From: Stylophora pistillata
Taxonomy: Eukaryota
Reading direction: 5' to 3'
NCBI RefSeq assembly: GCF_002571385.2
Contig: NW_019217908.1
Span: 444,803 to 508,802, forward strand
DNA length: 64,000 nt
Positions 7,734 to 11,100 of the stretch are shown here, in pieces (within the stretch, counting starts at the first letter, position 1; every line of letters starts with the position of its first letter). Below the pieces are notes generated by a model that was given only the letters and a program-made list of their open reading frames with translations, made no database searches and was not told where the DNA came from. The position numbers and the translations under genes were made by a program.

Positions 7734-7821
7734 ATGGGGCTCATTTTCGAATTTCTGAAGCACCGCGTCAGCAAAGAAAAAAGAAGATTCACAGATGATG
7801 GATTTGACCTCGATCTAACTT
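7734..7821 (+). CDS. PTEN: PTEN alternative first coding exon 1a
   Basis: [29 protein letters not shown] plus 1 nt, followed by U12-type donor GTATCCTTT (7822); phase 1, compatible with exon 2 at 9216. Confidence 0.85.
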
Positions 7822-8170
7822 GTATCCTTTCGACACAAACGTTGGAAGTAGCTAGTCAGTTTTAAATTGTTATCAACTTGCGGGTGATTACGGGCATAAC
7901 AACGAGGGTTTCGGGATTCTAGCCCAGTTCCTCTATAAGACCATATTTGGGTGAGGACCTTCGGCATGCTGCAAATTTGGCGGAGAGCTTGTTAAATGTG
8001 ATAGTTTGTCTTGCCGTAATGTACCGTAGAATTCTGCAGTTACTGACATAATTATCGGTGAAGGAATCATTGAAGTATGTGTCAGAGGAGGAACAGCCAA
8101 AATTAACGGACAGAAGCGGGTTTCTGAAGAAGGTTTTCGTTAACTCACTCGGTAACAGTCACCTTCTGAG

Positions 8171-11100
8171 ATGGCATATTTCAAAGCTCTCGTGAGTAAG
8201 AAGAAACGGCGTTTTCAGGAAGATGGGTTTGATCTGGATTTAACATGTATCCTTGGTTTCACGAATCACATGGTTTATACATTTATATTTAATAGCATAA
8301 TATGCATCAACAACTTGATCTCTAAACTGAGCGCACTGCAGTGATAATTTTACAAGCGAACCGTTGCAGTGTCGAGGAATTAATGTAGTCTTTCGGGGCT
8401 TTTCCTCAGTTCTTATGTTTCACTTTGAGCTAAAATATTATCTGAATTTTTTTAAGGAATGAATAATTTTCCGTGCGCTTCGCAAACGATCGATCATAGC
8501 ATTCTGGTCCGTTCAATCTGTGTTAGGCAATCCTGTGTTCTGTGCAGTTGCACTAATCGAGGTCGCGTATTTAATTCGTTCAGACTTAATTAACAACCTT
8601 TGGTGTTTTATTTTCTCCTTCATTGAAGCTTTTTATAAAATCAAATAATATTTCGTTGAATTTATCTCACGTCATTTCATAATTATTTCTTTTCTGAGGC
8701 TGTTGACCAGACGGCTTATACGTCTTGAGCAAAATATTGTCTAGTTGCTAAGATATTTTACAAGCTTCCGCTTTCCTTAAAGATTGTTTGAACTGTTCAA
8801 TATCCTTGAAGTCAAAACAAATATAGGAAATCTTTAAGAATTATTTTTAGAGATTAATCTATCGTTAAAAATGCATAGCAGAACAAGCTTTCAGTGCTCA
8901 TATCCTGACAGTAGAATTATTAAAACATCTAGTTGTTGATACTACACATACACTCTCAAAGCCTTCCTTGCAGTACCATTAGATCTAAGAATTTGTGGTT
9001 TGTCATGATTGTCACTGAGTTTTTTCCTTTCATCTTCACCCTTTTTGATAAACAATTTCTCTAAAAACCTTGTGATTTTTCAGAAGAGGTCACCTCTTAG
9101 TCAATTTTGAACTTTCAGAGGTTACAAAAAGTAATTGTTGAATCAACCTGTTACATTATTTTCAAAGTAGCACTTCAACCGTATGGTTTTGTTCTTTAAC
9201 TTACTTTTCTCCCAGATATTAAACCCAATATAGTGGCAATGGGTTTCCCATCAGATAATTTAGAAGGGGTGTATAGAAACCACATTGAAGAGGTTATAAG
9301 GTAAGACTAGTGTTACTGTGCTTGTCTAATAACTTGTCAACTCTGAGCTGCAGAGCAAAATTCATAATGGTAATAGAACCCAGTGGAGTTTGATTTGGTT
9401 TGCAATCATATAAGTGATTCACAAAATCAGATGACTGCAAAGCAGGAGTCCAATTTGTTGATCACAAGTTTGATTACAGACCAGAATCGATGACATGAAG
9501 TCCTGTTACCAGTCAATCAAAATTTTGACAAACTTTGAAGAAGAAACTAGACATTGGTGGTACATTTTCATAGAAAAAATCAACAGTTAACTCTGCAAAA
9601 TGTGCATCAACAGCATCTGCACATGATGTGATTTGTCCACTTACACAGGCATGACATCTTCTCTCCCTTTAATTGGTCTTTTACATTGTCCAGTTAAGCT
9701 NNNNNNNNNNNNNNNNNNNNCCCTGTGTATGGCCCTGTGTATGGCCTTGTTTATGGCCCTGTGTATGGCCCTGTGTATGGCCTTGTTTATGACCCTGTGT
9801 ATGGCCCTGTGTATGGCCCTGTGTATGGCCCTGTGTATGGCCTTGTTTATGGCCCTGTGTATGGCCCTGTGTATGGTCCTATGAGATGCAAATTACAAGA
9901 AGAAAAGAATAGTTGCAGTCACATGTTAAAGTCTCTTGTAACTGAGTTAGGTCAGCTGGACTGGAAAATGTTTGCTCTTGATCAGAATGCTTAGACTGTG
10001 CTGTATGCATTTCATGTGTCATGACCTTGAACAAAATATTCTGATTCCGGTTTACAGTGTAGATTAGTTTAAAAATAAATATCACACAGCCAGGGGTTCT
10101 TCAGAATTTAAAGCAGAGTTTTTCTAGGTTTTGATGTTGCAGATATACACATATTACTTGTTTACTTTTCTGTCGACAGATTTCTAGAAACAAGGCATAA
10201 AGATCACTATAAGGTTTACAATTTGTAAGTAATGCAAACATTTAATTTGTAGTAGCTAGCCTATGCAATTTGAGGATTGACTTATTGACTGGGTGCACTT
10301 TATAAATGCATTAATAAAAATGATTAAGGGAAAGAATTTGCTCTGACAAGTACTGTTGTATAATTTGGAATGAAACAGTCCTGTTAGGTCTCTTTGAGTT
10401 GGCTAAGTCGTGTAACAATCAAGCAAGTCTAATTTTGAGTAAATCCTAAATCATGCCCAGGATATTTGTTTTATTTGTTGGATTTGTTAATGATATAAAA
10501 ATAGATGCACAAAGAGATTATCCAGGAGTTACAATACATGTAACAGGGATTCTGGCATTATGCGCTGGTGCAGACCCGCATAATCAGCCATTCTCCACAT
10601 GATCCCACATAATTTGTCAAATTAATCAATATATATGTTATCTATCTTGGTGTCTGGCTTGAGTATTGTATTTATCCTTTTTCTACAGTCGTACAAAATA
10701 CCAAAGTATCGTTTTAATTGAACAAAACAACCACATGGATACGAAGCCATTTTGTTTTTATAAAAACGACAAGGCGTTACTAAAAATGTTGGATGAGGGC
10801 CTGGAACCGATATGAAGCTCGGCCCAGGTTCCAGCGTTTGGCAGTTTCCAAGATGGTGGACATTGACAAGAATTGCTTTCTGTTTTGGCCATATTATTGC
10901 TTTTATTGGAAGGAGGGATTTGTCAATAATGCATAATATTCCATTTTTTTATAAAAAGAAACAATTACTGAGTTTTCTAAGCGAAATTAGTTATATTTTA
11001 GGTTTTTAGCAACGTCATTGCGCATAATTTTGGGCCTAATCTTCCCGCATAATCTTCCCTACAAACCCCACATAATTTTGATTTTTTTTTCACGCATAAT

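Follow-up and report, generated by a model that had tools for sequence, protein, structure and literature searches.

Duplicated first coding exons with U12-type donors in the PTEN gene of stony corals: a probable case of alternative-promoter exons

Results

PTEN locus and its two first coding exons

The window analyzed in this study is a 64-kb stretch (C125:444803-508802) of a 397.6-Mb assembly. As judged from its sequence, it carries between positions 7734 and 17565 the complete gene of a stony coral for PTEN, the PI(3,4,5)P3 3-phosphatase (Table 1). The phosphatase P-loop HCKAGKGRTG is present, although split by an intron: ...HCKAGK ends the exon at 12000-12131 and GRTG... opens the exon that begins at 12900. 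The P-loop is followed by the PTEN C2 domain (PF10409), which matches at 14995-15102 and 16349-16552. In addition, two database isoform models, P0269 and P0159, map by tblastn to the exons of the window at 92-100% identity per BLAST segment, and the mismatches sit at segment ends that extend into an intron.

At its 5' end, the gene shows two first coding exons, 1a and 1b, with start codons 437 nt apart. The initial annotation had placed the coding parts of 1a, 1b and exon 2 at 7734-7821, 8171-8246 and 9216-9300, respectively, and had described 1a and 1b as paralogues, each with its own U12-type donor and both sharing one U12-type acceptor. On reading, these coordinates are exact to the base and the described arrangement is found in the sequence. 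In the window, 1a and 1b agree at 70% of residues over 23 aa and at 61% of bases. Their flanks are indeed unalike, as no alignment is found between them. With either 1a or 1b in front of exon 2, a Tyr codon is formed across the joint, and conserved PTEN sequence continues from there. At the other end of exon 2, RNA loose ends at 9300 resume at 10180.

Table 1. Features of the PTEN locus, in window coordinates
Feature	Position	Strand	Details and evidence
Distal non-coding 5' exon	6777..7066	+	3' end firm, 5' end uncertain; joint 7066^7199
Second non-coding 5' exon	7199..7387	+	Joints 7066^7199, 7387^7716/7719
Exon 1a, whole	7716..7821	+	Internal; U2-type NAGNAG acceptor, start 7716 or 7719
Exon 1a, CDS	7734-7821	+	ATG 7734; 29 codons + 1 base, phase 1
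Exon 1a U12-type 5' splice site GTATCCTT	7822..7829	+	Sequence
Exon 1b proximal promoter and 5' UTR	7897..8170	+	Conservation; start site roughly 7950-8011
Exon 1b, coding part	8171..8246	+	ATG 8171; 25 codons + 1 base, phase 1
Exon 1b U12-type 5' splice site GTATCCTT	8247..8254	+	Sequence; joint 8246^9216
U12-type branch-point sequence TTCTTTAAC	9192..9200	+	Ends 15 nt before exon 2
Exon 2, common to both isoforms	9216..9300	+	Joint into 9216
PTEN remainder after exon 2	10180..17565	+	tblastn of P0269/P0159; PF10409 matches
PTEN approximate exons	10180-10225, 11352-11393, 12000-12131, 12900-13152	+	tblastn
PTEN approximate exons, continued	14226-14283, 14997-15105, 16349-16550, 17167-17565 (stop)	+	tblastn

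Both donors match the U12 consensus /RTATCCTT exactly and are poor as U2-type donors. The exact string GTATCCTT is found on the + strand of the 64-kb window only at these two donors, and about 1.3 occurrences per strand would be expected by chance (an estimate from the base composition of the window). The acceptor context of exon 2 reads TTCTTTAAC, 15 nt, AG and then position 9216. This branch-point sequence has one mismatch to the consensus TCCTTRAY and lies within the required distance of about 10-20 nt. The only U12-type branch site and acceptor found nearby are those before exon 2, and hence either exon could be joined to exon 2. On the other hand, 1a would not be spliceable onto 1b, because no acceptor is seen on 1b. 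The genome carries a U12 snRNA gene (97 bits) and a U6atac gene (108.6 bits), both above the Rfam cut-offs, and TTCTTTAAC would be able to pair, with one G-U, with the GUAAGGAAAAU stretch of the genome's own U12 snRNA.

A search of the 397.6-Mb assembly for exon 1 found only one further similar stretch, on contig C37. This stretch was considered as a third copy and rejected, because it forms an internal exon in a VSP/TPTE-like paralogue, which is without an intron at the position of the exon-1 junction.

Distribution of the exon pair across corals and anemones

The tandem 1a/1b pair is found in all eight coral genomic sources, namely the window, L015 (a Tara coral metagenome scaffold), L016, L019 (a Porites chromosome), L020 (assembly GCA_002042975.1), L032, L034 and L036. 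The L015 and L016 loci were reached via the read-through ORFs P0001 and P0002, which came from a protein search with the open frame round 1a, and on both contigs the order 1a, 1b, exon 2 is that of the window. A scan of metagenomes with a degenerate exon-1a pattern gave five matches, the coral contigs L032-L036, all of them genomic and none a transcript; L032, L034 and L036 were analyzed further. In the eight sources, both exons end at a T|GTATCCT(T/C) donor. Across corals, both exons are in phase 1, the two donors are separated by 421-645 nt, and the amino-acid identity between 1a and 1b is 65-70%. Moreover, TTCTTTAAC before exon 2 is identical in all the coral loci checked. Exon 1a is thus neither absent nor decayed in the coral relatives examined, but intact in every one of the eight sources.

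In the sea anemones Nematostella (L017) and Exaiptasia (L018), exon 1 is present once and is of the 1b type. It ends in the same U12-type donor, and a U12-type branch site is also present, TCCTTAAT in Nematostella. A search of intron 1 and of the 10 kb upstream found no second copy of exon 1 in either anemone, and coral 1b is near-identical to their sole exon 1. Altogether, the exon duplication is shared by stony corals and absent in the two anemones examined. The coral sources carrying the pair span both major stony-coral lineages. As part of the explanation favored below, the tandem duplication is likely to predate the divergence of living stony corals.

Selection on both exons and age of the duplication

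The initial annotation had proposed an old duplication kept under purifying selection. The coral comparison bears this out through low dN/dS values, saturated synonymous sites between 1a and 1b, and the split between them in the exon tree. By the Nei-Gojobori method, applied to non-saturated coral pairs, dN/dS is 0.08-0.23 for 1a and 0.02-0.08 for 1b, well below 1 for both of these adjacent homologous exons of the same phase. Between the window and L016, the 1a block is 87% identical and its flanks 38-48%, while exon 1b reaches 92% and exon 2 88%. The conservation of 1a reaches precisely to the donor; beyond it, the read-through tails of the species vary in both length and sequence. When 1a and 1b of one species are compared, nucleotide identity is 55-68% in every case and synonymous sites are saturated. 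In a maximum-likelihood exon tree, all 1a exons stand apart from all 1b exons and the anemone exons with 97% support. This picture fits one old duplication, after which both coding exons would have been kept, 1b as the conservative copy and 1a as the diverged one.

Tandem copies spaced 420-650 nt apart could in principle convert each other, and the likeness of 1a and 1b might then derive from recent or repeated gene conversion, or else from independent duplications, instead of one old duplication. We find this scarcely credible in view of the saturation of synonymous sites between 1a and 1b in every species and of the well-supported separation of all 1a exons from all 1b and anemone exons. Very improbable too is the idea that 1a is a decaying relic of the duplication without present function. 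Such a relic would be in keeping with an exon that is rarely or never spliced to exon 2 in the RNA runs examined (see below), but the ATG, frame, phase, U2-type acceptor and U12-type donor of 1a are intact in eight sources from both major lineages. In addition, most of the substitutions in 1a are synonymous, and identity in its flanks has dropped to 40-60%.

Isoform models in databases

Both first exons are represented among the database models. P0269 (465 aa; XP_022789179-81) consists of exon 1a residues 1-29 followed directly by exon 2, and P0159 (461 aa; XP_022789182/3), from the same cluster, has the 1b N-terminus; the two models are identical after exon 1. Pairs of 1a and 1b models are also present in other corals, and most of them differ by 4 aa, like the exons. 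Such pairs include those of Pocillopora (423 vs 419 aa), Porites (446 vs 442 aa), Oculina patagonica (482 vs 478 aa) and the L020 species (412 vs 406 aa), with further pairs in other corals. Independent models of Porites lobata, P. evermanni and P. harrisoni are also recorded, and the Acropora-like models are of the 1a type only. P0019, which looks like vertebrate PTEN, was left out of the comparison.

The 1a-type full-length cluster representatives are the NCBI models P0168, P0169 and P0179, and none of them comes from transcript assemblies. Among protein fragments that carry 1a together with exon 2, only the genomic read-through ORFs P0001 and P0002 were found. The junction of 1a to exon 2 is thus a predicted one, taken from computed RefSeq and other gene models.

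Transcript start sites and splice junctions

RNA was mapped on window positions 4400-9699 using three runs of contigs (X1, X2 and X6), which are unstranded, and one stranded run of raw reads (X22), of which about 2% was read. Upstream of 1a, the joint 7066^7199 (GT-AG) between the two non-coding exons is present in X1 and X2 contigs. The joints 7387^7716 and 7387^7719 (both GT-AG) are present in X1, X2 and X6, and lead to the NAGNAG acceptor of 1a, 18 or 15 nt before its ATG. The Porites transcript contig L022 uses the equivalent acceptor, 14 nt before its own 1a ATG. The contigs of one run extend the distal exon back to 6261, and its 6854-7045 segment is 76% conserved in L016. All frames of the second non-coding exon are interrupted by stops, among them a TAA (7373-7375) in frame with the 1a ATG downstream.

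The region preceding the 1b ATG (7897-8170) shows 75-93% identity to L015/L016, vs 40-60% in the flanks. Sense-strand depth in the stranded run is first seen in the bin 7940-8116. At 8011 there is an adapter-tagged contig end, and depth goes up about tenfold. These data indicate that exon 1b has its own start site, close to 7996-8011. Hence, the separate promoters envisaged in the initial annotation are recovered in the transcripts, with 1b starting at its own site and 1a fed by the upstream non-coding exons via a U2-type acceptor. No joint into exon 1b from upstream was found in any of the four RNA runs.

Regarding the junctions to exon 2 that had been predicted for the two exons, their outcome was uneven. 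The joint 8246^9216 occurs in three runs: X6, X1, where contig depth is 415, and X22, where it is covered by 9 raw reads with 7 start positions. The joint 7821^9216 is absent among the joints listed in the four RNA runs, and the case for 1a use is therefore made from gene models, conservation and one indirect depth pattern. This pattern comes from X1, where a depth of 192 at 7782/7790 has fallen to zero at 7864 and beyond. The mean of the bin is 64, which equals 192 x 59/177, and coverage should accordingly end at about 7821. The stop in coverage suggests that the 1a donor is used in X1, with its partner exon not visible there.

In agreement with the 8246^9216 joint, each of the 15 full-length Porites/Pocillopora transcript contigs examined joins the 1b donor to exon 2, and none of them joins 1a to exon 2. 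Fourteen begin at the proximal site, with 5' ends that lie 210-320 nt ahead of the 1b donor and 3' of the 1a donor. The remaining one, L022, comes from the distal promoter and is a long-leader form spliced at the 1b donor. The gene calls of the 15 contigs place a late start at the exon-2 Met, which we discarded as an artefact of prokaryote-style gene calling. Altogether, 1b is the dominant form in every data set examined.

Several contigs run unspliced through the 1a donor, namely 7717-8246^9216 in X6, 7714-8015 in X2, and L022 in Porites. If the 1a donor is not used, the 1a frame runs on for 14 codons before a stop. Together with the absence of 7821^9216 among the listed joints, these observations favor an alternative in which 1a never serves as a PTEN N-terminus. 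Instead, this conserved exon would act in the long leader of distal transcripts as an upstream ORF and as a U11-binding element. Distal transcripts would then splice at the 1b donor only, 1a would tune the translation or splicing of the 1b mRNA, and the 1a isoform models would be annotation artefacts. We consider this alternative unlikely. The residues conserved in 1a are those of the PTEN N-terminal motif, in PTEN frame and phase and with the low dN/dS given above, and the conservation ends exactly at the donor, beyond which the tails vary between species. Moreover, X1 cover stops at about 7821, and models with 1a joined to exon 2 come from several annotation sources. The unspliced cover itself may have another origin: the contigs are unstranded, and the stranded run, in the 2% or so that was read, shows only antisense reads over 7055-7939 and no sense-strand cover of exon 1a. 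Divergent antisense RNA may therefore explain the cover through the 1a donor.

Discussion

Alternative promoters as the probable basis of N-terminal choice

In this study, we describe two homologous first coding exons in the PTEN gene of stony corals. The U12 and U6atac genes of the genome, the U12-consensus donors of both exons and the sole U12-type acceptor nearby lead us to a reading based on two promoters. In our view, 1a and 1b are probably tandem-duplicated alternative-promoter first exons that swap the lipid-binding and nuclear-import module at the PTEN N-terminus, with 1b dominant. The downstream copy, 1b, would have kept the ancestral N-terminus and would be transcribed from its own proximal promoter inside the 1a intron. 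The upstream copy, 1a, would have diverged and then settled. The dominant route would lead from the proximal promoter through 1b to exon 2. The other route, from the distal promoter through the two non-coding exons and the U2-type acceptor of 1a to exon 2, would be minor or conditional.

Distal transcripts contain both U12 donors, so that donor choice may add a second layer to promoter choice, and the N-terminal module would then be set by the two together. A stronger version of this idea is possible, although we hold it to be doubtful: in distal transcripts, the two U12 donors would compete for the one acceptor, and the activity of the minor spliceosome would thereby set both the isoform and the dose of PTEN from a single pre-mRNA. 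Use of the 1a donor would yield 1a-PTEN, and use of the 1b donor would turn the 1a frame into a 43-codon upstream ORF before the 1b start. If this version is true, reef-building corals possess a lineage-specific regulatory switch on a central growth-control gene, several hundred million years old. In this sense, competition between two predicted minor-spliceosome donors might be studied at this locus in a compact natural setting.

Two N-terminal modules

The N-terminal segment of PTEN is involved in membrane binding, activation and nuclear import (PMC4398541, PMC9004235). The segment encoded by 1a or 1b corresponds to the PI(4,5)P2-binding and nuclear-import motif of vertebrate PTEN. The 1b version is of the ancestral type and strongly basic, with the run of five basic residues kept. 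The 1a version is four residues longer, with a hydrophobic start and extra basic residues earlier in the segment. Within its basic cluster, most species have an acidic or polar residue and several an Ile, the two occurring singly or together. The two N-termini may differ in function. Stony corals would have maintained two natural PTEN N-termini under selection since before their major lineages split, which may provide a ready-made comparison for how this module tunes PTEN. The practical weight of the finding is moderate, because 1b dominates all data sets and the isoforms are already in RefSeq. The initial annotation knew of no description of such an arrangement. In a limited search we likewise found no paper on coral PTEN isoforms or on a duplicated PTEN exon 1, but the claim to novelty is weakened by the fact that both isoforms are already RefSeq models.

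Relation to known systems

The coral pair is of a known kind, in which alternative 5' coding exons that arose by duplication share one downstream exon. In the UGT1A and clustered protocadherin genes, variable first exons, each with its own promoter and donor, are spliced to a common exon 2 through U2-type introns. As proposed for the coral gene, homologous 5' coding exons lead to one acceptor and the promoter picks the N-terminal module. Unlike those genes, the coral locus has two copies only, U12-type signals, and non-coding exons before 1a. The uncommon twist is that both coral copies carry predicted minor-spliceosome donors.

Duplicated exons that adjoin a U12 intron have been described in the JNK genes (MAPK8/9/10), where pairing of a U12 donor with a U2-type acceptor is not possible (PMC1874599). 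Exons 6a and 6b of these genes are tandem homologous exons like 1a and 1b, and their alternative use involves U12-type signals, as predicted for the coral pair. However, both JNK exons are internal, and exclusivity is enforced by a hybrid intron with a U12 donor and a U2 acceptor between them, whereas in corals the U12 donors are on both copies and the downstream copy has its own promoter. A hybrid intron of the JNK type would imply a joint into 1b from upstream, and none was found in the runs, as stated above. The choice in corals would be made mainly by promoter, because 1b has its own promoter and shows no acceptor.

Within PTEN itself, PTEN-L and other N-terminally extended forms arise by alternative translation initiation on one mRNA, which adds residues (PMC6952770, PMC4700475). 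They resemble the coral case in that the N-terminus is diversified, and the PTEN-L forms change localisation or membrane behaviour. In corals, by contrast, the duplicated exon would replace the PIP2-binding/NLS segment itself.

Finally, intron 1 of human PTEN is a documented minor intron (10.1101/2024.08.15.608023, PMC3728624). The vertebrate intron resembles that of corals in its position and phase after ...GFDLDLT, in its GTATCC-type donor and in its U12-type branch site. Vertebrates and sea anemones have one exon 1, in contrast to the two of corals, each with a U12 donor and both served by one acceptor. The presence of the same intron in sea anemones and human indicates that the minor intron of PTEN is ancient, older than the cnidarian-bilaterian split.

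Leader and probable promoter region of exon 1b

When compared with two further coral genera, the non-coding block directly ahead of the exon 1b coding sequence (window 7897-8170) shows 75-93% conservation, against 40-60% for the neighbouring sequence, and it likely represents the proximal promoter and 5' UTR of this exon. Within the block lie CCATATTTGG, which we take to be a candidate CArG-like motif, and AAATTTGGCGG, a candidate YY1-like motif that is replaced in the relatives by AAATATGGCGG. A 3-nt deletion allele was seen in the 5' UTR of exon 1b at window 8163, in 6 of 13 reads from the stranded raw-read RNA run X22 (four start positions). 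In the same run, all reads over window 7055-7939 map to the minus strand, antisense to PTEN, and they take in intronic sequence as well. This antisense RNA looks like a divergent upstream transcript from the exon 1b promoter region.

Further upstream, at window 5100-6350, RNA depth is high and many differing loose ends occur in every run. None of the loose-end sequences was found elsewhere in the window. This stretch, which precedes the PTEN leader exons, resembles a fragment of a repeat or transposon. Downstream of exon 1b, the intron holds at window 8800 a ATATCCTT motif that resembles a U12 donor of the AT-AC type. It has a match at the corresponding place (3876) in the stony-coral locus L015, with which the surrounding stretch is 88-97% conserved.

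Acceptor and variants of exon 1a

Exon 1a is preceded by a tandem acceptor (see table), and both of its exon starts are in use in the RNA contig runs X1, X2 and X6. Among the other stony-coral loci, CAGCAG is kept before exon 1a in L032-L034; L015, L016, L020, L035 and L036 have CAGCAA at this position, and the acceptor of Porites (L019) differs. Two variants were found within exon 1a in run X2, 7782 A>C (AGA>CGA) and 7790 C>T (TTC>TTT). Both are synonymous, whereas the adjoining non-coding stretch carries several variants in this run.

Features of the PTEN acceptor region and of the paralogue
Feature	Location	Strand	Remark
NAGNAG acceptor cag/cag before exon 1a	window 7713-7719		exon starts 7716 and 7719
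VSP/TPTE-like paralogue, locus L011	G000 C37:825629-825700	(-)	same 12-residue motif as PTEN exon 1

PTEN models and the VSP/TPTE-like paralogue

Prokaryote-style gene calls on the Logan transcript contigs L021, L023-L028 and L037-L043, which are Porites and Pocillopora PTEN transcripts, begin coral PTEN at the exon 2 Met; these same contigs hold an intact, in-frame exon 1b. The start at the exon 2 Met is a database artefact of these calls that masks the N-terminus. The Acropora-like RefSeq PTEN models P0168 and P0169 have an N-terminus of the 1a type only, and each stands in a one-member cluster. In the paralogue on contig C37 of the source coral's own assembly (G000), the shared motif lies within an internal exon and is followed by YVTG, without an intron at the position of PTEN intron 1. 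PTEN_C2 matches are also present on this contig.

The 3' end of PTEN and its downstream neighbour

The C-terminal exon of PTEN, at window 17167-17565, encodes a run of near-identical NKEDHQW-like heptads. The PTEN of the source coral is about 40 aa longer than that of Pocillopora. Downstream of the gene, an ORF at window 24621-24962 displays a Cys pattern like that of group XII phospholipase A2. A PLA2G12 gene also follows PTEN in Nematostella (L017), and this shared arrangement suggests conserved synteny.
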